This document shows positions 20,511 to 48,489 of a stretch of 64,000 bases of DNA, one piece after another (position 1 is the stretch's first letter; each line of letters begins with the position of its first letter). The notes under the pieces are model-generated. The model did no database searches, had not been told where the DNA came from, and saw nothing but the letters and a program-made list of their open reading frames with translations. The stretch covers positions 682,001 through 746,000 of the forward strand of contig JBLDXI010000015.1 of assembly GCA_047495785.1 (NCBI GenBank), written 5' to 3'. Source of the DNA: Lepidodermella squamata (taxonomy: Eukaryota > Animalia > Gastrotricha). A program made the translations under genes and the position numbers.

Positions 20511-21342
20511 TTACACCTGCGAGCAAGTTTCAATAGCTATACCGTAGATCGTAGTACTGGTCAGTGTGTTCACTGGCGTGTCTGATGGGCTTATAAACAG
20601 AGCTGCACAGCAGGCGCGGAACGAAGCGGACGCGTATGCCGACAGAGAAGTTTTCGCTTGGCCCTAATGATGAATGATGCACAACGAAAAAATTATGTCA
20701 TGCGTGACAAATCTAACGTACCGCAGTTGCACCAGTGATAACAGTGCCATAGCCTCCTGTCACAGGGTCGCAGGTGTGCGGAAAGGCGAAGCACTTCACT
20801 GCAACCGGTGAGGATTGGGCACAAGCTTTGTAAGGCGTCGTATCGGCTCCGACAATGCAAGCAGTTTGTGGCGTTGATGTCGTTGCAACAATTTGGTAGA
20901 AGAGGTTAGGCGACGCACCAGCCCCGGCGCAACAGGCAGCGAATGAGTCGTAACTGGCTGCTGGACTGGCAGGCTGTAAAATTGTGATTTAATCACTACC
21001 ACAATCGCGAGAATAGCGACTTACAGCACCGCCTGAAAGTACAGCGCAGTTGGCTCCCGCAGCTGAAAGGCAGTACTTCATAGCTTGGGATACAGGCGCT
21101 GGCGAGGTGATCGAACACAGCGCAAATTGGCCCTATCGAATTTGTAATCGTTAATACTGAAATTGAAAATGAAAAGGTCTTACAGTTTGATCGCAAAACT
21201 GGGAGCTAGTGCAGCCGCTTTCGGCGCAAGTTTGCCCAGAGGAGCAGGTTGGCGATGGACAGGGTGTCGAGGCTACGGTCGACGGCGGGCAAGCTTCGAC
21301 CGATGTAGCACCAGCAACCAGTAGGGCGGCTAAAATAAGCAT
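20511..21342 (-). CDS. 18-Cys secreted family, paralogue A1 (223 aa; exons 21342-21184, 21132-21025, 20973-20722, 20663-20511)
   Basis: Signal peptide then ACPPST...; three phase-0 GT-AG introns give an open frame ending ...SFRACC...IETCSQV*. Confidence 0.88.
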
Positions 21343-21833
21343 AATACTTGCAGGATTTCGAAAATGAAACCTGGCTCGGTATGGCTCGTCTGCTTTTCAT
21401 AACCAACGAATGTGTCCGTCAGACCAAGCACTTAAGGACATTTTCTTTAGCAGCTGAAATGCATTTCTCCAGTCAAAAAAACTTCGAACGCATTTTTCAA
21501 TCAACAGATTACCGTAAACACGGCGCTGCTACCGTAATTCCGTATTTTCCAGAAATCGAAATTTCTAGGCAAAAAACCAGAACTTTGAATGATGCAACGC
21601 GCAATTGTAATTCTTTCAAGGCTTGAGTCGCCGAAATAAATGTTGAATTTCGCTGATGAAATCGGCTGTTAGAGTGCGTTGCTACGACTTGTTTACAATT
21701 TCTAGTAGCTTCGTGCGACAAATCCAGGTCTGGACAAGATAGCAGTTCCGAAAGAGACGTAGCGTGCTGTAAAATGTTAGCCGCAGTCAACCGGCCTAAA
21801 TTTCAATTTTTCGACTTAGGTGTAGCAAAAACC
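21343..21833. promoter_or_regulatory. putative bidirectional promoter A1/B1 with conserved forkhead-type motifs
   Basis: ~490 bp between divergent ATGs; GTAAACA (21514-21520) and TGTTTAC (21690-21696) retained at equivalent positions in the second cassette (44427-44433, 44600-44606). Confidence 0.55.
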
Positions 21834-22650
21834 ATGCAAGCTGCTATTTTCCTGCTCGCCGTTGTTTCAGTCGCCGACCTAGCCCAAGCCTGCCCGCCAT
21901 CTACTTCCGCTGCAACGCCGTGTCCTACAGTTGTGACGTGTCAATCTGGAACCTCATGCCAGCAGGTGGCTTGCCCTAAATCGGGCTACGCTTGCTCGAC
22001 TTCGGTACGAAAAAACAAGCCGGCCCATAATGTATAATGTTGGCATTTGTTTCAGGGCCAATTTGCTCAATGCTCGGTCCCTACCAGTGTCATAGGAATT
22101 CCGGCCACATTCTGCCTTTCGACTGGCACGTGCTCAGCAATTACAGGCGCAACTGTAGGTTCCGACTTGAATTTGCTGAATCTCGCTAACATTTGAAGTA
22201 AATAGGCGACTGGAACTACTTCGAACTCGTTCGTGAGCTGCTGTTCGGGCGTGAGCCCCATAACATCGAACATCCAGTACATCCAGCTGGCAGTTAGCAA
22301 CTCGCCCGTCACGATGTGTGTCGCCACGAATGACGTAACAATGTACAGAATGTGCCAGGCTTCGGGAACAACCGTATTGACTGGCGCATCGTGCGTCCGC
22401 TTCCCAAGCTCTTGCGAAACCGGCAAGGTTCAAGCTACAGCGGCGCTGGTGAGTTCTGGAAAGTAGTCAAAACCATAATTACGTTACTGTGCCATTTGTT
22501 TGACAGGATAACGTTAGCACATTTGTCTACAGCACTTTCCGCGAATGTTGTGCAGCACTCAAAAAATCTACCGCACCAGTTACGTCATCCCAATTCACAT
22601 CCGTCGATGTTCTCGGCGTTACGGTCGACAAATGCATCGGCGCTCGATAA
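21834..22650 (+). CDS. 18-Cys secreted family, paralogue B1 (218 aa; exons 21834-22004, 22056-22154, 22206-22448, 22507-22650)
   Basis: MQAAIFLLAVVSVADLAQA|CPPST...; same intron positions and Cys spacing as A; ends ...TFRECC...VDKCIGAR*. Confidence 0.88.
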
Positions 22651-23034
22651 ACGGATACGAATACCACAAGATAGTTGAACAAAAGTGTGCGGCATTAACC
22701 TTATCACTACGGGAACATTTCTTACATTAGAGAGCATTAATGCTAGCATGAATTAAAAGCTTCTCCGCCACTCTATTCATTCTTAAGGGTATGAATAAAA
22801 GCGAGATGTTTTTGGTTTTGAAATACGATCCTTTTTTACAAATTAGCAGTAGCCAAAAGATATAACAATGATTGAGCCGTGAGTCATTTATCTATGAGTT
22901 CCTCTCATCTTCCATCGTTTGGAACCTCTTTATTCTCAAGTTTGGGTTGATATTCATATCTTCCTACCAAGCGGACGTAGAATTTTCCCTCGCGCGCCTT
23001 GTTTCGCTTTGATTTTGGCGTTTAGGCTTCATTG

Positions 23035-23280
23035 CAGTGTGCGACTTTCAGGGGGGATGGGGGGGATCATCCCCCCAGCTCGGCCAGGCCAGACAACAAT
23101 ATGAGAATTTATCCCACTGTTTTGTTAATTTTGAGAGGTTGTGGAGCATGTTTTAGTAAGAAATTTTCAAAATTTTCTCGCTTCGCTCGGTTATAAGTCA
23201 AAATGACCAGTCATTTTGGCAAATACAGCAAAAATTTTTGTTCCATCCCCGGCAGCTCCGGGATCGAAGATCGCACCCTG
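23035..23280. mobile_element. hAT-type MITE (~245 bp)
   Basis: TIR cagtgtgcga / tcgcaccctg, 8-bp TSD cttcattg; second copy at 48630-48847. Confidence 0.88.
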
Positions 23281-23703
23281 CTTCATTGAGTCTCTTGAAG
23301 ACGAATAATTCGTAGGTGGAGTGTTACTTGAGAATTAGCATCGAAGTGCATAGAGGCGCTTATTTGATTTTCAAAAAGGCCATATTCAATTGCCACGTTT
23401 AATAAAGCTCAGACATCAACTGGGCATCAGCTCACGGTTTTTGAGAAGCCATCCAGCGTATAGCCTCTCATCTAAGGGCCGAGATCATTTATCACCGGGA
23501 TACACTTGTAAGATGATTAAGAACACATTTTTATAACGAAGGACCGTTTTATTGACGCGATGTAACAAGCAGCAAGCAGTCCCATTGCTTCTTTAAATGG
23601 TATGTTAACCTGATTCAGTAACCTGATCAGTTAACCCGATTTCCTAATATCATAATAGGAATGGCGAGATATAAATGCATTCAGTTTAACTCAAACAGGT
23701 CAA

Positions 23704-24570
23704 TCAAGCAGTCTGTATACAGCCATCAACAGATAACCCCGAGACACTCATGCCCAAGGCAACGTAAGCTGCCGCTGCCGTTTGCTGCGCTATAGCGGCG
23801 CAGCATTGCTGGAAGGTAGCGAACTGGTAAGCTGCTGGCACAGGGGCAACATTCTGAATTAATGGCATTACTTTTGTTGTGGGACACGTACAAAGTTGGA
23901 CAAGAACTTACGGTGGCCGTTAGCTGGGAGCCCGCGTTGCCGCACGAATTTGGTAGGCGAGCGCAAGACCCTAATTTCCTAGCTAACGAATCGGCGCTGT
24001 AGGAGCACACCTTGTAGGGCAGCGAATCGTTGGTGCCGATGCAAATGGTGGACAAATAGTTACGATAGGGTATGCTAGACAGTTCATAGATGACCGTTGA
24101 CCCAGTAGCAGCACAGCACGACGCGAAGTCGTTGAAAGTTCGCAACGGGCTAGCGGTCTTCGAAGAGAAGTTCAAATCAAGCATAAGCCAACAGAAAAAG
24201 AGGTCGACCTACATAGGTGCCAGATGGAAAATTTGAGTTTTCGCACGACGTTCCGGCTACACTCGAGCAGGTGTTGACAATCACGTTCATATTCGTTTTG
24301 AATTGACACATGGTATATTGGCCCTAATCAATATGCAAACAACAAGTTTACAAGCAAACAACTAGATACGTTACGGCTCTTCAGAAACTAACTTACCGCC
24401 AAAGTGCAGCCTGTTCCCGTGGCACAGGCTGTGGCACCACACGAAACTCCGGATGGGCAGGCGATTGCACTTGGGCAGGAGGTTGCAGTCGAAGATGTGC
24501 TGGACGCGGGACATGCGATTGCAGCTCCCACAAGTGTGGAAAGAAGCCCGAACAGTGACAACAAAGCCAT
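23704..24570 (-). CDS. 18-Cys secreted family, paralogue C1 (226 aa; exons 24570-24397, 24323-24213, 24157-23912, 23853-23704)
   Basis: MALLSLFGLLSTLVGAAIA|CPASS...; FNDFASCC and ATFQQCC modules; open spliced frame. Confidence 0.88.
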
Positions 24571-24997
24571 GATGAAATTACGACAAAATGATTGAGGAAA
24601 GTTGCAGCCGAAGGCTTTATCGGGCAAACATAAACCGTCAGCACCGCTTTGATAAAACCGTAATTTCAAAAATGCACAAAAATTGAATAAATTTTTTAAG
24701 AACATATCGAAATAGAAAAACGGAGATTGTGAAGCAAACTTCATCTGTTTGATCTATTTCTTAAATAATGGTGCAGATCAATAAGTCCGGATTGATTTCA
24801 CCATCTCTAAGAAACTTTCCGGCTGATACGGTAGCTGTCATGTTGTTCTCCTGATGACTGGAGCGGGCAATACATGACCTTAGGATGAAATTTACTACAG
24901 CCTCAAATTGAAAGTCTGACAAGTCATCACCGTGTTCATAAAACTGGTTGAATAGCTGTCAGTTTCGCATTTTTTTGCTCATCAAACAGCTTGAAAA

Positions 24998-25848
24998 ATG
25001 CGTGCATTTTTGCCAGCTTTACTCTTCTCCTGTGTAGCTGCCTGTCCTCCGTCAACGACTACAACTCCTTGTCCAACAGGTGGACCTTTGCATTTCTGAA
25101 GCATTATTTAGCTACTCTCGATGTATTTAAAGCCACATGCTCAGCTGGCCAAGTCTGTGGCGGCTCTTCGTGCCCCACAAATCAGTTTTGCGGCACGACA
25201 GTAGGTGATGCCAAAAACTTTCCAACAATCCTAAGCTTCGCGTACTTCAGGGCACTTATTCGCAATGTCAGCTAGCTGTAACCAGCGGCCAAGCCACTTT
25301 TTGCTTGAATAGACCTGGTGCATCGTGCGGATTGCTAGCGGGAGGAGCGGTGAGCTTCAAGTCCAGATTTATTGCTTTCAATCATTGATTGCTTGCAGAC
25401 ATTGGTCGGATCGACGACTTACACGACGTTTGACTTGTGCTGTTCTGGACTTGGACCTGCGAATCAGATAGTTCAGGATCTGTTGCCCCTGAACCCGCCG
25501 GTGTTGGCCTGCATTGTTACGCCGGAATTAGCATCCACTGCTTACAGAGTGTGCACGCCGACAGCAGGCAGCGGCAATGGCGTGTGCTACCGCTTTCCGT
25601 GGACTTGCGACTCCACTGCAAAGGTTTTCTCCACAGCAACGGTAGGAAAACAGCCATTTAGCTTTAAGTGTGTATTTCCAGTCTTCTCTGTAATGTTTTT
25701 CAAGTCTCCAACTGCACTCTTGTCTGGCAGCGGATCCTACACGTCATTCTCTGCATGCTGTGGTGCTTTGAGTGCCTCCAATGCTAAATTGTCAATCTCA
25801 ACAGCGACCATGTATGGCTTTCCCATGGAGAAGTGCTCCCAGAACTAA
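24998..25848 (+). CDS. 18-Cys secreted family, paralogue D1 (211 aa; exons 24998-25079, 25133-25200, 25251-25349, 25399-25641, 25705-25848)
   Basis: MRAFLPALLFSCVAA|CPPST...; TTFDLCC and TSFSACC modules; one extra phase-1 intron; open spliced frame. Confidence 0.88.
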
Positions 25849-28070
25849 TACGAATCGCTTTGCGAAGATGCAAATTGTCTTACTATCTTCAGTAGTGATA
25901 AATAATGACCAATGAAAGTATGAATTCCCGCTCTCCTTATTTTTTGAAGCAGTAAATAAACAGCACAAGCCGATCAGCTTTCACTACAGGGTGTTCCTTT
26001 CGAAACCGAACATCCTGCCGTAGTCGCGAAAAAAAAATCTGCCGGTTAATTAGAGAAAATAATTGACTAAAATAATTATTAAACACTTTTAATAATTGTT
26101 TTTAATTTTATTTTCAATTGCAAAATGTCCTTGAATTTTAGCGCGCGTTACCACGTCGACGCGTTGGTTTTCAAATTTTAGCCGTTAAAACGCCTGAAAT
26201 CAGGGTTTTCTAACCCAGTTCTTAAGATAGTCAGCGAGCGCGTAACTCCATGCCTGACAAATTTCAAGTCAGTAAAGCCAGCTGAATGCAATAGCCGCGT
26301 CCTGTTTTCTTAATCCATCTCAGTTTCTGCGATGTGATATACCCAAAATCGGTAAAAATAGCCTTAAATTGCGCCTCCTTAAATTCACCGCTGGGATCAA
26401 AAAGACATAGGTGTAATGTGTTTTCCTGCAGTCATTGAGGATGCTAATGGTATATCAAGCGGCCCTGATAAATTATTGCTCAAGTTTGAGTCCGCGGATC
26501 AGAGAAATGCACCCTTTTATTGCCAAAGTGCAATGCAATGCAACAAGCTGTTTCACGGTGAAAATGGTAGTGGCATCATATAAATGGATGGAAAGACAGG
26601 TAACAAAGTGTCGCGATTACATCTATACATGTCGCTGATCCGAGTAAGACATTTGCTCCTTCTTCATAATCAATAATTCCACATCCTGGTATTGTTATAC
26701 CAAGTCATCCGCATTGATGCCGTAGTCCCCTATTCCCGATTGATCAAAGCTGACCTCAAGGGCTTTGCCACGGTTATATCGAGCATTTTCTCTCAAAACT
26801 ATTCTTTTCACATAGACTCTAACCATACAATAACAAGGCAACATGATCAGAGAATGGATTGATATGGTTTAGCCGCTAAACTTCTGTCGCTCATGTCGGC
26901 CGTTCGTAATGTCGTAATGTTAAACTTCCTTACTAAAGATTGTGGTTCATATGCCTTTTACTAAGCATAAAGCATAACCTTGGTAACTACATGCTTAGTA
27001 AGGGCTGCCTTCCTAAGGATCCATCTAAGGACTGCATTCCGCGTCATTTAAGGTGCACAGCTCTATCTGAGATCACTTCCTTAGATCGCTTAGACTTTAA
27101 GACGGAGAATTCTGAGTATGGATCGTCTAAGTAAGCCACCCTTACTAGGCGGACCAGTGGCGCTGCATCCTTACTAAAAGCCGTTTTGCCAAGGATGTCC
27201 TTAGCAAGTAACGCATAACAAAGACGAGCGTCTCCATAGCGTCTCACTAACTAATTTGGCATCCTTAGCACCCTTAACAAGGCAAATCAACATGGCACGA
27301 CCATTCGCACCATTCAAATCAAGTTAAGTGTCTAACAAAGCGTCATATAAACTGCGCTTGCATACTAATTGGTGGCATCCGGCGGCGGAGCACGTCGTTA
27401 AAAGTGAGATAATAGCAACGTTTCAGTGAAGAATTCACTGATTCCACCGGATATTAGGACAGCCAGGATAACTGAGACAACGCTCAGAGACTGATAACTG
27501 AGATCCAATTCGTCGCAATTGGACGTTGATTATTCGTCTGCGGCGGCGCGGGGCTACTACCGGAACAGTTTAATACCAATTTCTGTGTTCTATTTCATTG
27601 ATTTCCTTGCGGCAACAAGTCGTGGCCGGCGTAACTGTTTTTGACTGCGGTATTCCTAATCAAGTTCAGGACCATGTCAGTCTTTCTCTTTTGATAAGCA
27701 TCATTTCGATCTCCGTAACGGCACACGTCCAATAAGATCAGTCCTGCAATCGCGCAAAGATTTCTTGTTTCTTGTCAATCAGAGAAGCTTTCTGATGGTA
27801 AAAGATATTGAGAAACCGTACCTTCCGACGGCCTTTCGCTCGATATCTAGACACAAACCAGTTAGAGAGTGAGTTTAGGAACGCTTTTATGCTTTCATGC
27901 TATATCAGTCCCGCGGGGATTTAAACTTGTCGTGAGCTATAGTTAAGTCTTCTGCTGAATTTTAACACGATTATAGTTATACATTCAAATGATGACTAAA
28001 ATGTATGCATGGACCTCAAATGACCGCATACATCACGAAGGAATGCGGCTACAACGTGTTAAAACGTCCT

Positions 28071-28542
28071 CTAACCAGGATGGGTATGACATAGGAAAGC
28101 TGACCTTGCGCTCGAGGTAGGGCGGCACCACCGGCTTTTTTATGTTTCATCGTCAAACTGATGTAGTCTCTTACAAAATTAAATTATTATAGCCGTAATC
28201 TAACCGCTGAATTGTTATCTAACACCAAAAATGTTCCGAAAAACCCGAAAAAACCCGAAATATGCAAGCCAAGCCACTGAAACTGAAAAACCGCGCTGAC
28301 CAACCTAAAATTAATGGTAAATAAAAATATACACTCTATTCTACAAGGAAACGATGAGAAATAGTGCTCTTGCCAGGTTATTTCAAGCGATGGACTATCT
28401 TTAAAGTTGTTGATCTGACCTAATGATGACGTCTAACCGGAGCGGGTATGGCAGACAAAAATGGGCCCTTCGCTCGAATTACGGCGGCAACACCAGCTTT
28501 TTCTTGCTTAAACGTCATACTGAGATAGCCGCTTAGCAAAAT
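28071..28542. repeat. diverged ~110-bp direct repeat (28071-28180 vs 28433-28542)
   Basis: ctaacc.gga.gggtatg...cgctcga...ggcggca.cacc.gcttttt...cgtca.actga...caaaat present twice. Confidence 0.6.
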
Positions 28543-29147
28543 CACCCAATTGGACCCCAATCCATTATTGACTGCTCATTTTTTGGAACCGAACCATCGA
28601 TAACCATATAAGACCTAAGATCACCTCTCTGGATCTCTTCACCTGGGTGGTTTTTTATTAAATATCTGAAAATTCAAATACAAAAGTCCTAATATGACTG
28701 CGTTTTCCGTTAAATGAGCACGCTTCAAGTTGCATTGACTTTTCGCCAACACAGCACTATAGAAATAGGATAAGAATTTTCAGGTATATCTTTAATCACA
28801 GATCAGGTATTTGGGGAACAGCCAGTTCATGTTAGGATCTATATGATTAGGAGAACAAAGTTTTCTTCCAACAAACGCAAGTGCCATGGCGCAATTTTCA
28901 GGGCGTAAAAATGCTGGGTGCAAATGTCGGGGCGCAAAAGTCAGGACGCATTTTTAAGGGCGCAAAAAACTGTTCGCATGTAACTTCAATTCATTATGGG
29001 TAGCCTAGTGTAAATGCATTCGTCGCATATACCCGAGCTACTTTGTAATTATCGATGTTATGTACTTTCAATGTTACGTCATCATTTTTACTCAGACTCA
29101 AAAGACCGTTCTTTTTATTTTTGTTGGATGCTTGTAACAAGTTACTA

Positions 29148-29538
29148 CAGGGTGGCCAAAAAATTCCGCAGAAGGCGAATTTGATGCACAACATTTTAGA
29201 GCAGGAGAGAACACTTCCAGCATTTTAGAGAGAAGTTTCGAGAAATTGAGGAGTTCCATTGGCAAAAGAATGCTTGAAATTCTTCAGCTTCTTTTGGCCA
29301 CCAAGGACATGGCGGTTTAAAACTCGAATTATGCGGTATCTGGTAATTGAACCGCATAATTTTGCTATCACATCGTCGGCAGGCACGTGATCTATGCTAA
29401 TTTCGAACTAGAAAAAAATGAAAATTATCGAGTTTGCAATTTTTTAAATTCTAAAATGTTTCTAAAATGTAGATCCTCCTAAAACAAGGCGAGAATAATG
29501 CAACAAACCGCGTCACTGCGGCAGGTTCAAGCCACCTG
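29148..29538. mobile_element. possible Tc1/mariner-like MITE
   Basis: TA-cagggtggc ... gccacctg-TA; a similar ta-cagggtg terminus occurs at ~25985. Confidence 0.4.
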
Positions 29539-29805
29539 TATTTTAATTCGGAAAAAACCGAAAACTCAAACATCGGAAAATATCGAAAGGTTCAAGATTA
29601 TTTTCCTCATGATTTTCGTGGATCTTCGTTAGGAGTTCCACAACATTGTAGTCGAGGCAGGGGCTGCCCTATTTTCCTTTAATTTTCTAATATTCAGGAG
29701 AAAATTCTACCTACCCACATTATTCGAATAATAATCGCCACGATTTCCTCAATTTTTATCCGTGATGTATTTAAATTTCACATCTAAAATTAAAAATGAA
29801 TGAGA

Positions 29806-30564
29806 TGCCCAAGCTCCACTACAGCAGCTCAGAATGTGTGCCCATCTGTTGCTGCTTGCCCGGCTGGAAAAAGTTGCAACGCTCTGCCTTGCCCGAGTTC
29901 GGCTTATTCCTGTGCATCGCCGGTCTGAAATTTTTTTGAATAATTAAGTAATAATCTTATTTTGTACAGGGTCAATTTTTATAATGCCAGCTGAATACAA
30001 ATGTCGTGACCGTGCCGCTCAATTTTTGTCTATCAACTATCAACAGGAACTTGCTCAGGAATAAACGGTGCTAGTGTGAGTTTTGCCCCAGATGTCCTCC
30101 TTGATATTTCAAGGTTGCGATCCTCACAGGCTTCCGGTCCATTTTTCTCAGATTCGTTCGACATTGACATTCTCCTCCATTTCTTATACATACAACTGTC
30201 GATGAGCAACGCGCCAGTGACAATTTGCGCCTCGACGGGAGAAACCAACATATAAAGAATGTGCAACACGCCTGGAGCAGCTAATTTGGGTGGAGCCTCG
30301 TGTGTCCGATTTCCCAGTACTTGCGAGACAGGGAAAATTCAGATCATAGCACCGCAGGTGGGCGATCATAAGTTCGTTCTAATTTCCCTCATTTCATCTT
30401 TTACAGGATTCACGTATGGATTTTTTCGAGTTTTGTGGCTTGTTGAGCCGCTTTGCAGCGAAATGTCCCGACGTCGTCTCAATTTACGGCGGTCAATGTT
30501 TACGGCGTTACGCTGGACAAGTGTCTATGCAACAGATTATCAGTTACGCTCAAAGAGTCTTTGA
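29806..30564 (+). pseudogene. pseudogene of 18-Cys family, B-type
   Basis: Same exon layout (CPSSTT...; GQF..CQL; MCNTPGAANLGGASCVRFPSTCETGK; VYGVTLDKC), but no signal peptide, in-frame TAA/TGA stops, a 7-nt duplication frameshift (tatcaac x2) and a lost CC. Confidence 0.85.
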
Positions 30565-31227
30565 GCGTAACTGATAGCAATGTTTACGACGCAAATGCTA
30601 TTTCATTGAAATGATGAATAAAGGAAGAATATTAAAGCTTTTAAAACCGCACTCAACTGTTAACTGTGAGCGCAGTGAGTGAGTCTATGTTCACTACCTT
30701 TGTTAAAATTAACCCGCTAACTCTTGCAATGGTTATAAGTTGATACTGTTGCCAAATTAGGTATTACATTTCCAGCTTCATAAATAAAGCATTAATTTTC
30801 TCCAATTCGATGCGGAATTTCTTCTTCATTATCATAGAGATCAGATTAATCAGGTTAATCTGATCTCTATGTTCATTATAGAAGCTTTTTTTCATCTTAC
30901 CTGAGATAATTCAAATTCACATAGGAGCGTAATCAGTTTTTAGTTTTTAGTTTTTCGCAAATAGGAAGCAGTTGAAGAATTTCTAACATATTCGAAGCAT
31001 AATTTTGAGTGTCGAGAATAGAGAACCTCATCATTTCGTTTCCGTTCTTCATACATTTTAGGGTTCGGAATACGTTACAGAATTTGTATTATCTTTCAAG
31101 GTATTTTAAGCCCATTTACAGCTTGAAGATGGCGAAATTAGTGACAGCTAAAGCTTTGCGCCAATCGCAAATTGGCTTTGTTTAACTTCCTCCAAAAAGA
31201 TCCTGGCTACGTCTCAATTTGTTCCAT

Positions 31228-32162: not shown

Positions 32163-32191
32163 GTTTTGATAACAGCCCCAGTCAAAAGTCT

Positions 32192-32356
32192 GTAGGCCTA
32201 GACTAGGCTCGTAGGCCTATTATAGGCCTAATTGGACCTAGCCTAGTTCAGGCCTAGGTCCAGGCTAGGCCTAACATCAAAGCTTTGAACATGACTCGGG
32301 AATGTTGGACCTAGTCTAGGCCTAGCCGATATTATAGGCCCAGGTTAGGCCTACTA
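32192..32356. repeat. cluster of palindromic taggccta motifs
   Basis: Many taggccta/ctaggcct copies within ~170 bp. Confidence 0.65.
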
Positions 32357-33837: not shown

Positions 33838-35400
33838 CAGTGGCGTAACTAGGTCTACATTTCATGAGATTCAGTTTAGTTTCCGGGTATTTACGAAGAA
33901 AATACTCGATAATAACTTCATCAAAGTCGATTTTTTTCGCTTCCGTGCGAAGTACAACACTAAGAGAGAGTCAAGATGGTTATTCGTCATAGTTGTCCTC
34001 AAGTCGGACTTGGCCAAATTCATGGCGGAAAAAATGCGCTTAGCAAGAGTTAACAAAATGAGTAGCAGATTAGTCAACTGAGGGAAGGCTGATTTGCGGT
34101 AAACACAAATGAGAAGATTTGGAAAAGTTGCGAGTTCGTGCCTTCAGCCTTATTTAACAGCTCAGCTTTTACTCAGCTCTCTTCATCCAACAAATATTTC
34201 AGATCATTTTGAGCTCGATTTGTAGATCGGAGATTGAAATTTGGTGAAGGAACGTTAAAGGAACGTAAAGGTTTTCATAATGGCGACTGGAAATTTGATC
34301 AAATTCAAGATTGTTCTTCTCCTTTCGGTTGCGACGTCTTGTGCTAGGAATTTCTGGATCGATTTCGAGCTTTGCAGCAAGTTCAGATGCCGATTGAGAC
34401 AAATCTTTCCAAACCATTTCTTATCGGCTGTCTAGCAAGTCACGAATGAGCGACCTCAGCAAAATGAGCGCGCTGCCGTAGTCTAGATTTTCACTTTCAA
34501 GAACTTTAAATAATCGATTAACCTAGTTGACATTCGAATAAGTGATCGTATGCCTGTCCAACCGCCATAGAAATGTCGAGTTTCAAGTTTGACATCGTCG
34601 ATTCAATCTGCAACGCTATGTCCTCAGCCGTCAAACCATGGAGAGCTACAAAATTGACGAGTCGTTCCTTCCTCCGAATTTCATGGGTCTCAGGGTCTTC
34701 GAACAGATAGGAGAGAGCGATAGCAGGATCCTTCTCTTGAAAATTTCTTTGAAATTCCCTTGATTAAGTGATTTCTCAGATTCGTCTCTTCCGAGTATCG
34801 CAATATTTTGAATAGCACATAGATGCAGACGACCTTCAGCTACAGCTTTCAAATAATACCGTTCATTTTCAACTTGAGCCTCGTAGCCAGAAACCATTGC
34901 ATCAACGACTGTTCCATATTTCCAGTTTTTGAAGCCAGTTTCGATGAAAGTGTCCTCTTTGTTGCTGTTAGTTGCGGAGTGACGGCAAATAAAGCAGAAA
35001 ACGGCATTCCGCGATTTACTGTACTCGAGGAACTTCTTGAATACTTCTTGAAGTAACTCATATTGCATGACCGTAGCCGATCCGAGGACGCATCGTAAGT
35101 AGATGGGAATGACGCCGTCTTTGGATCTGGCTGAAAAGGCATATCGGCGGGGGATTGTGAAATGTCATCCACATCTTTCAAATGTTTAGAGCCAAGTCGC
35201 ATTAAATTCCATAGCATCATTCGCCGAAGAAGTCCTGGATATAATTCTACTTGAGATGTCATTCTCCTTCTTTTCTTTGCTGTTATTGATATCCACCGAT
35301 CCGAAAACATCATCATCACAGGGACCAACGTCAACCGTTCTTTTGCGCTCTAAATTCAGGTTAAAATTTGAAAGTTTCGGATTTTCCGGGCGCTTTTCAG
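33838..35400 (-). mobile_element. decayed hAT transposon (ZMYM1/TTF-zinc-finger type transposase, frameshifted and deleted)
   Basis: LEYSKSRNAVFCFICRH...FIETGFKNWK (TTF-like), AIQNIAILGRDES...NQGNFKE, and hAT dimerisation-like FSAMNLAKSDLRTTM...LDSLLVL; terminus cagtggcgtaactaggtc at 33838. Confidence 0.85.
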
Positions 35401-35614
35401 GACTAACGGATGGCTTTCAGGTCTTCGAGTTGGTACCCCTTTGTAGAACTAGAGACGGGCTATCCAGCGATATATGTTGTACGCCTATAGAGGATCTAAG
35501 CTTATACGGTATAGGCTTAAGCCTATACGGGATAAGCAATATTTTAACCTGTCATAGCGGCCAAACCGTGAGAGTGACTATCGATCATCATATATCAATC
35601 GATTGCTGTAATTA

Positions 35615-35773: not shown

Positions 35774-35788
35774 ATATACATATCGATT

Positions 35789-35827
<39 letters not shown>

Positions 35828-37918: not shown

Positions 37919-38168
37919 CACGAGAAAAAATCACCCTAATTTGGGTGAGGAAAATCGGACTTTTAGCTTGTGAGTTCCCCTCATTTAGGGCCCTGTGAGT
38001 ATGGATTTCATGGATTTTCAACATTCAGCATTTATCTGAATTCATGCTGAATATCATCCCAATTCATCTACAAACATGCAGCTATATATTTACTGAGCGC
38101 ATGAATTCAGATACCAAAACTAAATTCATGCTTTCGGTAGATAAATTAGGGTGATTTTTTTCTGGTGT
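37919..38168. mobile_element. MITE-like element
   Basis: cacgagaaaaaatcaccctaattt / aaattagggtgattttttctctggtg inverted termini. Confidence 0.65.
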
Positions 38169-39359
38169 GCGGTAACATTATTTCAGTGTTTTTTTAAGGA
38201 AAAGTTCGGTGTTTACCCAAAACAGTTCGGTGTTTACACCTATCCGCCTTATATTTACCGGAATTTTTCGGTATAAAATTGCGGGAAATGTATACTGAAA
38301 ACAGCATTGCCTTCTATCTATTCTATTCAGCGGCTGAAATTGTGGGATAACAAAATCCAGAACTTGCGAGCTTAAATTTCGATTTTATGCTGGAATTTGT
38401 GCTGAGAATAGCCTAAAATTGCTTTAAAATAACGAAGATATTTCAAAATAAGTTAATGAAAACATTGCAGTTCACACTTCATGCATGGTGGTACTCCTCA
38501 GGAATGATTGCTCAGTAATCTTCAAATTCGAAAAATTCCTTACCAATTTGAAGTAGTGGTGTAGTACCAACTGTGTGAGGCGAAGACCACAGTCAAAGAC
38601 GCGGGAAACGAATCCACTAATGTAGTGAACACATGTGTGGGCGAAGCGAGCAGAAAAATGTAGCATTTTACAGGCATTTTAGGATAATTTTAACGTTGAA
38701 AATGCAGGAGATGAGAGAGTTAGCAAGTTTCCAGACCAAGGTGCTTTACAGGCACGGGCAGGTTTTGGATTTCGGTGTTTACATCGCCTATTTCTGGTGT
38801 TTACATTGTAAAGCCTGTAAACCCCTTAAAAACACTGATTATTTATAATATATTTCCTTAGTTGTAATTTTAGTCAGCGGGCGGATTTTTGGTCGGAGGC
38901 CGCGCGCATCAAAATTCCTAATTTTTCAGGAGAAGCAAAAAAACAAAAAACACAAATCGCGCATGAAATCACAGAAAAAGTCAGCATCTCGCGCACAATA
39001 CTTGCTGATTCGTAGCTTCAAGCGAACCTTCTATTTATGAATAACTAGTGTAACTTGACTTGTAAATTCCGAATTTTAATGAAAAATTGGCGTATGAACC
39101 ACGTATCATCTTCAAACTAGCCATTTTTTGCGTTGCACTGACTGTTAAATTTCCCTCCTTTTCTACCTTTAATCTGAATTCATTTTAGCTTTATTAGTCC
39201 TTCCGACCAATGCGCTGCGTTTGAGTCTCAACCAACCCCAAAAGGCACGTCAAAATTGTAGCGATAGCTATAAAGCTACACACTGCAAACTGCAAACGCA
39301 ATTTCTCTCAAAATCTCAACGCCCGCTCGAACGTGCTGTTCTTAGCAATTAAAGCACCG

Positions 39360-39475
39360 CAGGGCGTTCGCGTAATAATACTCTAGGCGAGCTAAAAATA
39401 GCTAAAATAAAGCTAAAATGCATGCAAAAAGTAGCAAAGCTATTTTTAGAATAGTATTATTACGCAAACGCCCTG
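39360..39475. mobile_element. small MITE/hairpin
   Basis: cagggcgttcgcgtaataatact / agtattattacgcaaacgccctg. Confidence 0.7.
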
Positions 39476-40065
39476 TAGTTCTACGCAATATTAATGGCCG
39501 AGAAAGACGGTCGACTGTGATTTCATTAAGATTTCTGCGTTAGCACTTCGACAGCGTCGTCTCAATGCCTAATTATTGCCAGCCTGGTAATAGAGGTTTT
39601 GAGCGAAATTTTTGACATTTTCGTCACCGCTCATTACAATTTTGCGCCCTAACTTAACCGCTGTATACTAACCGAACTCCTAGATTCAAAGAGTGGTCAG
39701 AATAACCGAATAAGGAATGAAATCAGAGATCACATAGATCAATCGCAAACAAATTTTGCGCGATGATTTTGTCTTCGGCGAAAATTCAAGTTTTGGCATT
39801 TCAGCAGAGACATACATTAAATAATTTTCACTTAACCTGACGCTGCGAGAATCTGTGCCTTGATATATTTTGCAGGACCATTGAATCCTATAGCCCTTAG
39901 GTGCCTTTCAAAATAGGGGTGAAATGCGTTTCTGCTTGCTACCAAGTCCCATTTAATTCTAGTCTCTCAACTTAATCCTAGCGCACCATGCGTTCTTTCC
40001 CTAGTTCGAGGGACATCTAGTTTCCAGAAAATTGAGAGGATTTACGATAAAAGGTCGAGGAAAAA

Positions 40066-40699
40066 TGGTGCTTTCACAAATGCGTCCGACGAGCGTCCGA
40101 CGTTTTCGGCGCCCGAATAGGCGACCGAAGTAGCGTAATAGTTGTCCGACGTATAGATTTTCTTTCACAAACGCGCGCACTTCGGCCCGCGCGCCCGAAG
40201 TTTAAACAATAGCGCGTCCGACGCGGCGCGCGCACGCACAACAAAGAACGTCGGATCGGAGGCCCCCAAAACTACCGTCCGAAGAGCGTCCGAACTCGTT
40301 GCTCTCATCTCGTTTTGCTCTTATATCATTGCTCATATCTCATTGCTCTTATTTTGCTTGCTCTTTTCGCACACAACCAATTTTTCGATGAAATTAAGAT
40401 TTTTATTTTTTATGATCCGCATCGCATTTCACGTCTCATTATTTAGTTAAATGCAGGATTTACGCTGAAATGGAAAATTTTTGCCTGACCCCGGTAGCCT
40501 GCCACTCGCGTGCACGCGCGCTCAAGTGCGTGACAATGAGCAACTTCGGCGGCCAAACAATAGAGACTTCGGGCGCCCGACCGCGCGCGCGCCTCCGAAG
40601 TGCCACTGATAACGCTCTCCGACGTTTCGCTTCACTCTACCGAAGTTTGCGAGTTGCTAGCCGACGTTTTCACCGTCGGACGCATTTGTAAAAGCACCA
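40066..40699. mobile_element. PIF/Harbinger-like MITE
   Basis: TIR tggtgctttcacaaatgcgtccgacg / cgtcggacgcatttgtaaaagcacca, aaa/taa flanks; internal ccgacg/ccgaag repeats. Superfamily call is tentative. Confidence 0.75.
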
Positions 40700-43357
40700 T
40701 AAGCCTCATGATACATGATCGGTGGGAAAGAAAGATGAAAACAACTAAAAAACGCCCATTTCATTGCGCGAATTTTTGATCGCACGCATTCGACGCAATG
40801 ACGTCAAAGGTCAAGTTTGGAATTTATTTGCGGTTTTTGTGTCTAAAAAAACTACAAGCAACAAGCTTCAAAATGAATATGGGGTTCTCGCGCGAAAAAC
40901 GCAATGGGAAAAATTTTTATGCGCACCTCGCAAAAGTGCACACAAGGTGACAAGTGTGTACATTTGACATTTTTGATGCCTTCATAATAATAGCTTATAT
41001 CGTCAAAAGTACGCATCGGGGATGAAAACGGATTGCACCATGAGATTCCTCATGAAAAACTGCATTAGAAAATGATGATGATGAAAACTCATTTTCGACA
41101 AATCAAACCTATCCAACCTTCTTTGCACTCTGGCGAAAATTTTACAGAAGTGCGTAACCCACGGTTTTCACTTGTGGCGGCTCAAATGTTTTTAACTGGG
41201 TGAATTTCAGAATTTTGAAGTAAGTATAGTTTCTGATTTCTGCATATTTCAACGCTTAGTTGTTCACTTGAGTGTCTCCTTAATAGATTCGAATAATAAT
41301 TTAAAATTTGAATATTTTTACAGCGAACATTCATAAACTGCTGCATAGCTTTGGCTGCCGCTGGCGGAACACTGGGCTATTCAACAGCAACGACGTATAG
41401 CTTCGCAATGGACAGATGCACGTAGACGCCCTGAAAGCATTAGCCACAGGCTACAGCCTGCCTTCATTTTGTGAACCATTTGCAAGGCCTTGTGAATATC
41501 TGCGTGAAAAAGCTGTTTCAATTTTATGGAATTACTTGGCGTTGAGTTAATTCGCTGATTTGTTATAAAAATAATCTGGCTTGGATGCATTATTCCTTAT
41601 AAAACAGATTTTTTCGAGGTCATCGGAACCTTAGTGGTCTCGCTATGGTTTCCTCGGAGCGCTGGGCACCTCACTGATACATTCCTGAAAGCAATCATTC
41701 AGACGACGTTTGACGATGGTGAGATTGCTGCTATGATGGAGCTATAGAATATAAAGAGAGAGGATGAGAGATAGAGATAGCTGAAATTAAACATTGAGTA
41801 AACGAGACGATTCGGCATACAAGCAGAGCCTGATTATGCAGCAATAAGAAACGTTTTTATCAAATAGTGAGGTTCGGCGTCATTCTTCCTTCTCCCCCGT
41901 CTTCTTTCTCAACCATTTCCCGAACTCCTCACCGGCTATAATATGATTTTTTGGCAGATGACTTTTCGAAGTGACTTATTTTGCTTTATTCAAGTGCATT
42001 TAACAGCGGTGCATCCAGTTTTCTTTTTAGTATGACAATCCTGCCGGTCTCCAGGGGGGCAGTTACCGTTTCAAGCTTCAAAATTTGCATCGACCGGCCG
42101 AATAACTCAGCAGTTTTTTGTAGACAGTAAATAACATCACTGCAATTTGTAATAAAGCGGGCAATTATCTTTACGATATGCTGACGCTCATTAACAGCTG
42201 CAGGCGCGTTGAGGTACTTAAAAGTTACCTGTAGCTACCTGTCGATTGCGTCAAATCTAGTCATTATCCGACCAGGCTGGCCATTATAGCTTCTCCATTA
42301 CAACATTACAAGTGCGTCGGCCTTATGTTGAATTTCACGTTAGCAATTTGTAAACAAATTTTGAACATGAAATTCGTTGTAGCTTTGAATGCTTTTACAC
42401 TAATTACAAATGCAATGCATGAGCATCGTATGATGATACTGAACTTAATGACCGTATAATGAAGCCATTTTGAGGATAATTGCCCGGTGGATCATAAATT
42501 ATAATGATGTTATTACATTTTACACAAAATTCGCCCGAGTTTGTCTGCCGGTCGAAGAAATTCTGGGTGCACCTAGCTTTCACCCTTTACCAGGGCTTTG
42601 TACCTATCCTATCCTTGTGAACTCGATGAAGCTGACGCCACGTACCGTCAGACCCTCTTCAGATTAGCCCTCTTGTGGACGTACTCCGACTATTTATATA
42701 AATGCGCCAAAATTAACTGAATTTAAAGCTGATGAACAGATAGAAAGCAAGCATTGAAAACTTGATGAGAATGCAGCAAAGATTCAATCGAACAATGAGT
42801 TGGGGACCGGCGATTTTCAGACCCCCGGAGAAAAATCCTGAGCCAATCCCCCGGGACCCTTATGCCCCAAGGCCCCTCCTGCTTTCTGGCTAGCGAAAAT
42901 ATTCAACGAGGGGCCCTTTTTATTTGCGGAATCACCAGTAATAATTAATTAATCGGTCGATTTTGAAGCTCCTGGACCAACATTCTGAAAAAATGAGCTT
43001 GCTCCGCTCGCACTTAGTCCACTCGACCAGTATTGTTAAGACTTCTGTGACCGAAACTTGCAAATCTCAGCTGCATTGTGTTCAGCATTGGCATCAAGTG
43101 GTTAGATGTGAAGAATGGTACTTTTTTATGTTGACAACAGATTTTCACGAGACGCGCCTTTATTCATATTTTCAATTGCGTTCAATTCATATCTAAGGCA
43201 AAAGACAAACGATAATCGAATAAACTGGTGGCATGTTGCAAATTCGATTAGGCACAGTTTCCACCGATCCGCGATCTTATCTAATCGCAACAGATTGCCT
43301 GAGAAACGTGATACTGCTGTGATCATGGGCATATATAGTAATTTGATTTTTGTCATT

Positions 43358-44245
43358 TTAGTTTGTGCAGTATTCAATATTCATGTTGTACAACGACGAA
43401 GTGCCCATTGTGTTGATTTTGGTCGTGGCCCAATCTATGTACAGAGCTACGCAGCAGGCACGGAAAGAAGCGAACGCGAATGTACCTATCGCTGTTTTAC
43501 CCTGGTGTAAAAACAAGGAGAAGTGATATAATGCAATAACAATTAATTACGAACCCCAACTGAAGCTGAAAGCGCGACGGTATAAGTTGTCGTCGAAGCC
43601 GCCGCATTCTCGCATGTGTGCGGAAAGTTGAAACACCTGACGTTGGTATTTGGTACGGTGTCGGTGTTGGAGCAAGTTTTGTATGGTGTCGTATCGGCTC
43701 CGAGAATGCACATAGTTTGCGCCGTCGGCAGTGTTGGCACGACTTGGTAGAAAACGTTAGTTGTCGCACCAACTCCACCGCAACAAGCACCGAACGAGTC
43801 GTAGGTCGCAGCAGGAGACGCGGGCTGGAAGAGAATGATTTTGAGTTTGATGATGAATTTCAGCCGGTAAATCGATAGCTCAAAGTGAATGTGATATCAA
43901 TAAAAGATGATTTTATGACTCACAGTAGCACCGCCAATCGCAGCACAATTAGCTCCAGGGGTTGAAAGGCAAAACTTCATAGCTTGGGAAACGGGCGCTG
44001 GCGAGGTGACGGTGCATAGTGTAAATTGGCCCTAATAGTTTAAAATAACTGATAAGTTCATAATTTTTATCAGCAGGCGTTACAGTTTGATCGCAAAACT
44101 GCGCGTTTGTGCAGCCAGCTTCAGCACACGTAAGCCCCGAGGAGCATGTCGCGGATGGGCACGGCGTCGAGGCAACAGTCGACGGCGGGCAGGCATCGAC
44201 CGCCACAGCGAGAACAGCTAGCAGGGTGGCTAGAATAGCAGTCAT
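43358..44245 (-). CDS. 18-Cys secreted family, paralogue A2 (227 aa; exons 44245-44084, 44031-43924, 43824-43555, 43501-43358)
   Basis: Closest to A1 (CPPSTVASTPCPS, SPAPVSQAMK.CLS, GADTTPYK.C, FPHTC, SFRACC); open spliced frame. Confidence 0.88.
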
Positions 44246-44743
44246 ATTCGCAGGATATCCACCGAGCTTTTTGAGGATAAATCGTGGCGCGGTAGCGTTT
44301 GGCTGCCTTATATTACCAGAGCTCGCGTCTGTTTGACCCCAAGCGTCGTGGCGATATCACTTCAAGCTGAGATATAGTTCTTCCAGCAAAAGAAAATTAA
44401 AATTTTCATGAACGTAAAAAATTACCGTAAACACTTAGATGCATCCTAATTTAATAATATTATTCTAATTGAATTTTTTAATTTTAAATTCACGATATGA
44501 GAGTATTGAAACGAAATCACGAGGCTCTCAGAAATTGAATCCTCGGAGCTGAGTCAGAATTTGAGGTAATATTCGGCTTTCGAGTACGTTGTTACGACTT
44601 GTTTACATTTTCCAGAGGTTCCGAGCTTGAAATCTAAGGCTTAACATTAATCCAGTTCTGTCAGACACGATGCGTGCCGTAAAAGAGAGCCGCAGTCTAT
44701 CGGCCTAAATTTCACCTTTTTGGCGCATTTCGTAGCAATAACC

Positions 44744-45573
44744 ATGCAAGCTGCCGTTTTCCTGCTGGCCGTGGTTTTGATCGCCGACCTAACCCAAGCC
44801 TGTCCGCCGTCGACGACCTCCTCGGCAACTTCTTGCCCTTCAGTTGTAACATGCCCATCTGGAACCTCATGCCAACAGGTCGCTTGCCCTAGATCGGGCT
44901 ACGCTTGTTCGACCAAGGTAGGAAATTGCATACCATACCATACCATACCATACATTGTAATGTGTTGTGCTGATATTTCTCAGGGTCAATTCGCTCAATG
45001 CTCGGTTAGCACCAATATAATTGCAATTCCAGCCACTTTCTGCCTTTCAACCGGCACGTGCTCAGGAATTACGGGCGCAACTGTAGGTTTCGAGGTGAAT
45101 TTGCTGAATGTCGCTAAACTGTATAGTAAATAGGCGACCGGAACAACTGCGAACTCGTTCCTCAGCTGTTGTTCGGGCTTGAGCCCCATAACATCAAACA
45201 TCCAGTACGTCCAACTGACGGTCAGCAGCTCTCCCGTCACAATGTGTGTCGTCACGAATGACGCAACAATGTACAGAATGTGCAACACTCCGAGTGCCGT
45301 TGTTATGGCAGGCGCGTCGTGCGTTCGCTTCCCCAGTTCGTGCGAAACCGGCAAGGTGCAAATGACTGGGCCATCAATAGTGAGTTGAAAATAAGTCATA
45401 CAGTAGCATTACTTACTGGCATTTGCATTTTACAGCAAGGCGTGACTGTTTTTGCCTACGCTAGTTTCCGTCAATGTTGCAGTGCAATTAAAGGAGTGAG
45501 TACAGCGTCCAAATTCTCATCAGCCGACATTCTCGGAGTTACGGTAGACTCATGCGTCGGGGTGCAATCGTGA
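44744..45573 (+). CDS. 18-Cys secreted family, paralogue B2 (218 aa; exons 44744-44917, 44984-45082, 45134-45379, 45436-45573)
   Basis: Closest to B1 (IPATFCLSTGTCS, SPITSNIQY, GASCVRFPSSCETGKVQ); open spliced frame. Confidence 0.88.
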
Positions 45574-46347
45574 TGAGCGGATTAATTATGACTAACAGAA
45601 ATTCGCAAAATTGATGAACAGCCCGAGTTACTGCGCTGTTTTAGATTATGAAACATTATTTCCAGGATAAATAAAAAGCTTCTCTGTTGCTTCCATTGTT
45701 TTTGTGGCCACTAATAAAAACAACAATCCTCCGTTTCACAACTTCCTTTGTAATGTTATTGAGCCGTTAATTTTTTCATCTTCTCACTTTCAACAGTCAC
45801 GTTCAAAACAAAACAGTCAATTCAAAGCGTTTCTATTTGAATTTAACTCTCAACACATCTGGTGGAAAATCAAGTTCAGAGTCCTGAATATTATGCTGTA
45901 TTCTCTTATTGTAAACTATTGTATTAACCATTAACAGGGCTTTGTTAGTGCAAAGCAATCCGCCAGTACTATTGTCACCTGGAATTTCTAATAATCGTAA
46001 TTTTGCCTACTTATTTCGGTCTAAACCTTGCCTTTTATAGTGTTTGGTCATTGATAGCAATTCAAAATTTGCAATAGAGATTAGGGCAACGTTAAGAGTC
46101 TCTAGAGCCAGTGATTGTATTGACCGCAATTGACCTCCTTTTGTTCTTGGTCTACAAATATGATGTCTGAGAGATAAGCTATGGTACCGATTAGGTTTAT
46201 TGGGTTCACTCTGCGTCAAGCGGATTGTAGACTTTTTCCATGTCATCTCTCGTTTATTAATGCTACAATTATTTAATCGAAAAACAGCAGCGTATCTGGT
46301 AACATGATGGGGATTATGTAGCGTTTAGCTCCATTCGAAAGTGTGAA

Positions 46348-47211
46348 TTAAGCTTTCTGTGAACACAGCTCAAAAGTTTTTGAATTAAGCGTATATGAAC
46401 CGTAATTGCCCGCTGCCGTTGGCTGCATTATAGCAGCGCAACATTGCTGGTAGGTAGCAAACTGGTAAGCCGCCGGGCTTGGGGCAACATTCTGAAATAT
46501 CCGATGAGAATAAATTCACTGGTAAGTAACGTACAGTCAAACTTACGGTCGTTGTAAGCTGGGATCCCGCGCTAGGCCCATAGGTGACACAAGACAACGG
46601 TAGGCGAGCACAAGACCCCCATTTCTTAATGAGCGATTCATCGCTGTAAGCGCACACCTTGTAGGGCAGGGAGTCGCTGGTGCCATAGCAAATAGTTGCG
46701 GGCGCGTTTCGATACGCCACATTCGGCGACTGTTCATAGACGACAGTCGACCCAGTAGCAGCGCAACAGGAAGCGAAGTCGTTGAACGTCTGCAAAGGGC
46801 TAACAGTCTGCCAAAAAAATCCTTACTTGTGCATTAAGGCCTAGCAAATTTTTACTCACGTAGGCGCTAGTCCCGAAATCGGTGATGTCGCAAGACTGGC
46901 CAGCGTTGCTATAGCATAGGTTGACAAGCTGATTCAAATTAGTTTTCAGCTGGCACATTGTGAATTGTTTCTTCAAAAGAATACAGTCGACTCAGATCAA
47001 AATGGAGCGTTAGAAGCTAACTCACCGCTACGGCGCAAGCTGTGCCAGAGGTACAAACCGTAGCACCGCAAGACACGCCGGATGGGCATGGAGCTGCTGT
47101 GGGGCAGGGCGTCGCATCTGAAGAGGAGCCTGAGGCTGTGCTTGAGGCGGGGCAGGCGACTGCAGCTCCGATTAGGGTGACTAATAGCGCAACTGTTGAC
47201 AGTACAGCCAT
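46348..47211 (-). CDS. 18-Cys secreted family, paralogue C2 (4 exons)
   Basis: Closest to C1 (TFNDFASCCAATGSTV, DSLPYKVC, GSCARLP, AAYQFATYQQCCAAI); ends FELCSQKA*. Confidence 0.85.
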
Positions 47212-47636
47212 TTACTGTAAATTACATAAAATAACATGAATTTATTCTACTCTACTATTTTATCAGGCTAAAGCATTCTGTCTGAACTTTTTCTAAAGAG
47301 TCGTAGAAACATCAAAGACAACAAATTATAATCAGTGTGCGAAAAAACTGTAATAAATATAACGGTTGTATGATTGCCTCGCTGAGCTCAGATCTTACCT
47401 TTTCTAATTAGAAGAGTAATTAAAACTTTATTTTTAATTTATTTCCTTAGTGAAGTTATCACGCTGATACGGTGACTCCTGTGTTGTTAGTTCAATGTAT
47501 GGATCTGACAATACATGATCTAAGGGCGAAAAAACATCAGCATTAGGAGTGAAAGTCGGACATGCCATCGTTCGGTTCATTAAACTGGTTGACCTGCAGT
47601 AGTTCGCGTATTTTCTTTCACCAGTTAGCTTGAGAA

Positions 47637-48489
47637 ATGCGTGCGATTTTGTCAGCTCTCCTCGTCTCCTACGTAGCTGCCTGCCCCCCGTCAACGACGT
47701 CAACGCCCTGCCCAACAGGTAGATTTTACGTGCTTCTATAATTTTCCCTAATTATTCTCCGCAGCGACATGCCCGACTGGCCAGGTCTGCGGTGGTACAT
47801 CGTGCCCTACTAATCAATATTGCGGCGCGACGGTGGGCTAATATCTGAATTTTCGCGAATTATCAAGCCACTTCCGTTACAGGGCACTTATTCTCTATGT
47901 CAACTTGCAGTAACCAGCGGCCAAGTCACGTTTTGCCTGAATAGGCCTGGTGCATCGTGCGCTTTGCTAACAGGAGGAGCGGTAGGCTTTTTGCTCAGCT
48001 ATCGCTGTCAATGATTGATTGCTTGCAGACGTTGGTCGGATCGACGACTTACGCGACGTTTGACATGTGCTGTTCGGCACCTGCGAGTCCTACAATATAC
48101 TACGAAGTGCTGCCTCTGAATCCACCAGTTCAGATCTGCATCAATACGCCCGATGCATCAGCCAACACTGGCTACAAAACCTGCGCGACGACTTCGACGA
48201 CTGGCAACGGCGTGTGTTATCGCTTTCCGTGGACATGCGACTCGACAGCTAAAGTGTTCGCCACTCAAACGGTATTAAGTCAGACTTGAAGATTCCTCAG
48301 CACAATGATCATTCTTGTTTTTCAAACTTTTTGCTAAAGAGCCCGGTTACTCTGCTAGGTGGTGGCAACGGCATTTATGCCACCTTCCGAGAATGCTGTG
48401 CAGCTTTGAGTGCTGCAACAGCGAAGTTATCTTTCACAACAACAACGATGTATGGCTATTCTATGGAGAAATGCGCACAGAACGCATAA
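47637..48489 (+). CDS. 18-Cys secreted family, paralogue D2 (5 exons)
   Basis: MRAILSALLVSYVAA|CPPST; closest to D1 (FCLNRPGASC, GNGVCYRFPWTCDSTAKVF, TMYGYSMEKC). Confidence 0.87.

Follow-up and report, generated by a model that had tools for sequence, protein, structure and literature searches.

What is encoded by a four-gene block that recurs in the same order and orientation within a single contig of a gastrotrich genome, and do its members act together? The question arises from positions 20511 to 48489 of a 64-kb stretch of Lepidodermella squamata DNA (GenBank assembly GCA_047495785.1, contig JBLDXI010000015.1, positions 682,001 to 746,000 of the forward strand), the whole of which we call the window. 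An initial annotation, made from the letters without database searches, had described here a secreted 18-cysteine protein family laid out as two head-to-head gene pairs, A-B and C-D, with the whole unit repeated. We read the locus, with moderate confidence, as a secreted orphan family whose four-type block was duplicated as a unit and whose products are probably components of a matrix or coat.

The genes appear in the window as fragments of open reading frames (ORFs). Models were built by reading all three frames around these fragments and considering every in-frame GT-AG intron between them, which gave one consistent spliced model per gene and eight intact genes encoding 211 to 233 amino acids:

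Gene A1: 20511-21342, minus strand, 223 amino acids with 18 cysteines (Cys) in the spliced model, four exons (21184-21342, 21025-21132, 20722-20973, 20511-20663).
Gene B1: 21834-22650, plus strand, 218 amino acids, four exons (21834-22004, 22056-22154, 22206-22448, 22507-22650).
Gene C1: 23704-24570, minus strand, 226 amino acids, four exons (24397-24570, 24213-24323, 23912-24157, 23704-23853).
Gene D1: 24998-25848, plus strand, 211 amino acids, five exons (24998-25079, 25133-25200, 25251-25349, 25399-25641, 25705-25848).
Gene A2: 43358-44245, minus strand, 225 amino acids, four exons (44084-44245, 43924-44031, 43561-43824, 43358-43501).
Gene B2: 44744-45573, plus strand, 218 amino acids, four exons (44744-44917, 44984-45082, 45134-45379, 45436-45573).
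Gene C2: 46348-47211, minus strand, 233 amino acids, four exons (47026-47211, 46860-46970, 46547-46807, 46348-46491).
Gene D2: 47637-48489, plus strand, 213 amino acids, five exons (47637-47718, 47765-47832, 47883-47981, 48029-48271, 48340-48489).

All 26 introns are of the GT-AG type and 46 to 99 nucleotides (nt) long, most of them 49 to 59 nt. Their phase is 0 throughout, except for an additional first intron in D (phase 1, in the head of the protein), owing to which D has five exons and A, B, and C have four. The guanine-plus-cytosine (GC) content is 27 to 45% in the introns versus 53 to 56% in the coding sequence, and a poly(A) signal lies 27 to 205 nt 3' of the stop codon in 8/8 genes. 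Judged by these models, A1 to D2 are genuine protein-coding genes. Two introns, D1 intron 4 (25642-25704, 63 nt) and B2 intron 1 (44918-44983, 66 nt), are stop-free multiples of three; if retained, they would add 21 to 22 residues in a variable linker and keep the frame.

Each intact protein begins with a signal peptide of 15 to 19 hydrophobic residues that ends in small residues, with cleavage immediately ahead of the first Cys. Mature products comprise 196 to 214 amino acids, of which 44 to 50% are Ser, Thr, Ala, or Gly and 6 to 8% are Asp, Glu, Lys, or Arg; their grand average of hydropathy is about 0 to +0.38, and they carry 0 or 1 N-glycosylation sequon. Eighteen Cys occupy invariant alignment columns in all eight window proteins and in the single outside relative, P0002, introduced below; D1 has a 19th, located within its signal peptide. 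Nine disulfides per mature chain are likely. Copies of the same type share 60 to 73% identity, and different types share 27 to 39%. The initial annotation holds up well at this level: its eight spliced genes and its <A B> <C D> order and orientation are accurate, with the second cassette 22.8 kb downstream of the first; its signal peptides, Ser/Thr/Ala/Gly-rich and charge-poor chains, and 18-Cys framework are measured in every protein; and its four strongly diverged types are borne out by the low identity between types and by the phylogeny described below.

The 18 Cys fall into three groups of six. Behind the signal peptide lies a 6-Cys head (C-x8-15-C-x4-5-C-x5-C-x4-C-x5-6-C) with a Pro/Ser/Thr-rich loop at its start, followed by two 6-Cys modules of ~75 amino acids each, both with the Cys order C-C-C-CC-C. 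Cys spacings are 11-15, 5-7, 18-23, 0, and 21-24 in module 1 and 9-13, 6, 24-33, 0, and 24-27 in module 2. The motifs C-P-x-S, T-x-C-P, F-x2-CC, Y-x2-C, C-x3-P-x2-C, and CC-x-A are invariant in A1 to D2 and P0002. A profile-profile alignment of module 1 with module 2 (hhalign) aligns all six Cys with a score of 25.6, which none of 150 column shuffles reaches (3.5 +/- 2.3; maximum, 12.1), and each module is interrupted by a phase-0 intron, the two positions corresponding to within 1 residue. On this alignment and intron evidence, the two modules are homologous and stem from an internal duplication.

Whether this architecture belongs to a described family was addressed with exon translations, the stop-free read-through stretches D1 25399-25845 and B2 44744-45082, and full-length P0002 as queries; the spliced window proteins were thus represented by their parts and not queried whole. 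A search of Pfam-A (hmmscan, E value up to 10) returned no relevant family for 10 exon translations, P0002, or the two read-through stretches (best E value, 0.065), a null result that includes Trefoil, PAN_1/PAN_4, CBM_14, EGF, Kunitz, WAP, TIL, UPAR_LY6, and the hydrophobins. No match to P0002 was obtained among PDB chains by sequence (phmmer; best E value, 1.9, to unrelated enzymes). Among 5.8 billion proteins, word-indexed searching gave no match for the D1 stretch, and there P0002 matched itself alone. In a protein atlas based on language-model features, exon 3 scored best with unnamed clusters (0.88), followed by PAN-domain clusters (0.85 to 0.87), and the best score of P0002 was 0.65; by the atlas's own standard, a reliable match needs 0.9 and 170 shared features, and all scores fall below this. 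In JGI metagenomes, 95 matches to a sequence pattern were obtained, with no relative among them, and a literature search on secreted 18-cysteine proteins found no match.

Searching 1.84 billion representative proteins exhaustively with an exon-3 profile (HMMER) produced seven matches, of which one, P0002 (E = 7e-12), is a true relative. The others (P0001, P0003, P0004, P0005, P0006, and P0007) were rejected as repeat artifacts, being repetitive proteins in which many weak stretches sum. P0002 is 227 amino acids long and carries a signal peptide and all 18 Cys of the window proteins, with which it shares 33 to 44% identity (local BLASTP; E values of 1e-24 to 1e-35), a resemblance well beyond chance. 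Its coding sequence, free of introns, lies on a 929-nt contig (L001) that was assembled from a public sequencing run (SRR30674226) and has AATAAA near its end; the ORF therefore represents a transcript. The length of P0002 is unchanged at three predicted exon junctions, which supports the splice models, and its coding GC content of 54% matches that of the window genes. In a maximum-likelihood tree, its branch lies outside the clades of all four types. A syntenic locus in a relative did not emerge from the word-indexed search with P0002, from its 929-nt contig, or from the JGI metagenome scan. Taken on these searches, the A1 to D2 family is a real, lineage-restricted, and previously unrecorded orphan family. 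The initial annotation had called the family unrecognised and unlike EGF, Kunitz, WAP, TIL, three-finger, CBM14, or hydrophobin patterns, and both statements stand: neither the exons nor P0002 match a Pfam model, PDB is equally silent, no atlas score exceeds 0.88, and a single true relative emerges from 1.84 billion proteins.

Could the modules instead be a very divergent version of a known 6-Cys extracellular domain (PAN/Apple, trefoil-like, or peritrophin-A/CBM14-like) that an exon-wise search misses? We consider this improbable. The trefoil (P) domain (PF00088) is secreted, protease resistant, and often found in tandem in mucus-associated proteins, and its six Cys follow the order C-C-C-CC-C, as do those of both family modules. 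However, it spans ~40 amino acids, with spacings of about 9-10, 9, 4, 0, and 10, disulfides 1-5, 2-4, and 3-6, and a CC-aromatic motif, whereas the family modules span ~75 amino acids, with longer spacings and an F/Y-x2-CC motif, and have no Pfam match. PAN/Apple domains (PF00024, PF14295) resemble the modules in being extracellular, with ~80 amino acids and 4 to 6 Cys; they are among the nearest named atlas neighbors of exon 3, and a low-confidence structure model (predicted local distance difference test [pLDDT] of 45) suggests a helix-plus-strands content. Against this, PAN domains lack a CC pair, their atlas scores are subthreshold, and no hidden Markov model (HMM) match is obtained; the atlas lead is also weak because exon 3 spans two half-modules. 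Peritrophin-A/CBM14 domains (PF01607) are 6-Cys extracellular modules without a CC pair that occur in tandem in gut-lining or cuticle matrices. The tandem 6-Cys layout is shared, and the C-x11-15-C-x5-7-C start of module 1 resembles the beginning of CBM14, but the family has a CC pair, lacks the conserved aromatic pattern of CBM14, and gives no HMM match.

Two further groups of proteins are similar in composition only, being small, secreted, nearly uncharged, and rich in small and hydroxyl residues. Fungal hydrophobins, restricted to fungi, are disulfide-locked proteins with 8 Cys (C-CC-C-C-CC-C) in ~100 amino acids, and barnacle cp19k-type cement proteins are Ser/Thr/Gly/Ala rich and without Cys. 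Neither shows a sequence relationship to the family in Pfam or in the profile search.

How the block came to be repeated can be read from its decayed copies and from the divergence of the intact ones. Further copies were sought by comparing the eight proteins with the 64-kb window by tblastn, followed by frame-by-frame reading:

Pseudogene B3: 29800-30536, plus strand, signal peptide lost, in-frame stops in the equivalents of exons 2, 3, and 4 (tblastn and three-frame reading).
Pseudogene C3: 31336-32162, minus strand, frameshifts in the equivalents of exons 1 and 3 and an in-frame stop (tblastn and three-frame reading).
D-like last-exon fragment: 41327-41422, plus strand, a half-module (CC...C) and then a stop (tblastn match to D2, E = 1e-5).

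The two decayed genes of the initial annotation thus correspond to B3 and C3, and the D-type fragment is an addition. No A-type remnant or any additional copy was found in the window by tblastn with the eight proteins. Judging from these remains, at least three cassette copies once existed, one of which is dead. In the maximum-likelihood tree, each type forms a clade with 99 to 100% support, B3 groups with B1 and B2, and C3 falls inside the C clade; the four types are therefore older than the block duplications. At the DNA level, the intact cassettes are 69 to 72% identical over genes and divergent intergenic spacers alike, so the block was duplicated as one piece. For all four types, synonymous divergence (dS) between the cassette 1 and cassette 2 copies is 0.65 to 1.1, and the ratio of nonsynonymous to synonymous divergence (dN/dS), a comparison that the initial annotation had proposed, is 0.20 to 0.33 in every pair. 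The duplication is therefore old, and the eight genes have been kept under purifying selection, a pattern that fits non-redundant paralogs.

In this history, four paralogous types came first and became fixed as the divergently transcribed pairs A-B and C-D, each pair with one short putative intergenic promoter of 425 to 500 bp. Copying of the entire 5.3-kb block followed, at least twice; two cassettes retained their full gene set under purifying selection, and the third decayed.

This divergence also bears on two other explanations. One is that the ORFs are not expressed and represent recently silenced genes or annotation-like artifacts, which seems to us barely credible. As silencing would have it, the eight genes are represented by neither a transcript nor a protein in the searched collections, but a dS of 0.65 to 1.1 has left 8/8 frames intact, with canonical splice sites, dN/dS is well below 1, decay is visible for comparison in B3 and C3 of the same region, and the homolog P0002 is transcribed elsewhere. 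The other is that this is a defense or recognition family of lectin-like binders or antimicrobials, in which tandem duplication broadened specificity. Small, secreted, disulfide-rich, tandemly duplicated proteins would suit such a role. However, an arms race is not apparent from the dN/dS values of 0.20 to 0.33 in every pair, the chains carry almost no charge and are neither cationic nor amphipathic, and Pfam gives no lectin or antimicrobial-peptide family match for the exons or P0002; we regard a defense role as quite unlikely.

The head-to-head arrangement raises the question of shared control, for which the four divergent intergenic regions were compared:

A1/B1 spacer: 21343-21833, 491 bp, putative bidirectional promoter, with perfect blocks at 21508-21521 and 21683-21697 in alignment with 44246-44743.
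C1/D1 spacer: 24571-24997, 427 bp, with conserved blocks starting at 24822, 24868, 24909, and 24941.
A2/B2 spacer: 44246-44743, 498 bp, with perfect blocks at 44421-44434 and 44593-44607.
C2/D2 spacer: 47212-47636, 425 bp, aligned with the C1/D1 spacer.

Between cassettes, the A-B spacers are 60% and the C-D spacers 52% identical overall, with perfect blocks of 7 to 15 nt kept. A-B retains as its longest blocks a 14-mer from 21508 (44421 in cassette 2) and a 15-mer from 21683 (44593). Both contain a TGTTTAC/GTAAACA core, which we take to be forkhead-like, and the cores precede the start codons of A and B by ~145 to 170 nt, with the same orientation relative to each gene. Such cores may hint at gut- or foregut-type expression. 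The conserved blocks of A-B and C-D do not resemble each other, and no 7- to 9-mer is common to all four spacers or shared by the A-B and C-D promoters. A motif shared by the two promoters was considered and rejected, the sole common 6-mer core (ACCGTA/TACGGT) being at an estimated chance level. The spacer comparison thus provides evidence of a putative conserved control within each pair and found none common to both pairs.

These data bear on the suggestion, going back to the initial annotation, that the four products are co-regulated and serve as obligate subunits of a single secreted hetero-oligomeric system, for example with A:B and C:D pairs produced in fixed ratio from bidirectional promoters. 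The head-to-head pairing and the gene order have survived a duplication whose dS is 0.65 or more, each pair has kept its promoter blocks between cassettes, and retention has been all or none: cassettes 1 and 2 retain 4/4 genes intact, and the third retains none. By hand calculation, this 4+4+0 pattern corresponds to 3 of the 495 arrangements of 8 intact genes in 12 slots, assuming that the third cassette was once complete. That cassette may never have been complete, however, as an A3 remnant is absent from the window, or it may have been lost in one regional event. The A-B and C-D promoters have no 7- to 9-mer in common and dissimilar conserved blocks, the even number of Cys in every mature chain implies no intermolecular disulfide, and the sole outside relative, P0002, is a single gene product that falls beyond all four types. 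We therefore consider such a hetero-oligomer rather unlikely. It is also doubtful, to a slightly greater degree, that A:B and C:D would be obligate partners assembling a secreted material or complex on a disulfide-rich fold without relatives among known structures, with the cassette, and not the individual gene, as the unit of selection.

We return to the reading of the products as matrix or coat components. The chains combine an almost uncharged character with an abundance of small and hydroxyl residues, an even number of Cys, and a Pro/Ser/Thr-rich loop at the start; they have no catalytic or known binding domain and evolve slowly. From these properties together we infer a coat or matrix role. 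The products would act extracellularly as compact, disulfide-locked proteins with an almost uncharged surface, and they would probably be protease resistant and O-glycosylated. Their most likely role would be that of a secreted coat or matrix component, as in mucus, gut lining, an egg envelope, or an adhesive; an enzymatic or signaling role is less likely. We further infer that the four types are non-redundant.

The assignment of a coat or matrix role is the least secure step of our interpretation, and several points weigh against the reading as a whole. Composition and purifying selection are all that the functional proposal draws on. The structure prediction proposed in the initial annotation did yield an AlphaFold model, but with a mean pLDDT of 45, it is too poor for a fold search or a disulfide map. 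None of the eight window proteins or their ORF fragments is present in a collection of 15 billion proteins, and P0002 may derive from another species or from an unlinked paralog. Lastly, the intron-3 donor of A2 is non-consensus, and other in-frame donors would change the protein by ~2 residues.

The cassettes are surrounded by a Cys-loop channel cluster, a Sushi-domain ORF, a Tc5/pogo transposase, an alpha-amylase, and a papain-family protease. The nearest atlas cluster of a neighboring ion-channel ORF consists mainly of molluscan proteins, which hints weakly at a spiralian animal. The following features accompany the cassettes:

Tc5/pogo-type transposase ORF: 8221-9477, plus strand, 418 amino acids, intact in appearance, with DDE_1 and HTH_Tnp_Tc5 domains.
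Alpha-amylase exons: 11117-13193, minus strand; in PDB, the large exon matches animal pancreatic or salivary amylases best, though only with an E value of ~1e-13 over 160 residues.
EGF-repeat region of an EGF-papain gene: 15222-15558, plus strand, to which the 6-Cys head has non-significant tblastn matches (E values of at least 0.1).
Papain-family protease domain (Peptidase_C1, E = 4e-58): 16413-17123, plus strand.
hAT-like (DUF4371) transposase remnant: 34646-35334, minus strand, within the 11 kb that separate cassette 2 from the decayed cassette.
AT-rich microsatellite: near 35800.
ORF with a trypsin-type protease-like end: 53470-53784, plus strand, flanking the cluster together with the papain protease and the amylase.

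The region may thus be a neighborhood of secreted or digestive genes. Repeats also occur in it. A ~170-bp repeat with 78% identity lies at 23035-23207, downstream of B1, and at 48630-48790, downstream of D2; these positions are non-syntenic, and the repeat is probably a short mobile element. A near-identical peptide stretch common to the ORFs at 1272-1568 and 19919-20126 suggests a further dispersed repeat flanking the region. Rfam and transfer RNA scans of the window were empty.

Lineage-specific secreted cysteine-rich families are common in invertebrate genomes, and few have an assigned role. The family described here is unusually clean among them, with a fixed 18-Cys framework, a demonstrable internal duplication, and four ancient types in a divergent-pair layout, and its locus amounts to a natural experiment in which two cassettes were retained whole and one was lost whole. 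Should the four products co-assemble, the cassette would be a compact model for how a multicomponent secreted material can be encoded and duplicated as a unit. Should they not, this would be another orphan family, whose value would lie in a new family definition for annotating an unannotated lineage.

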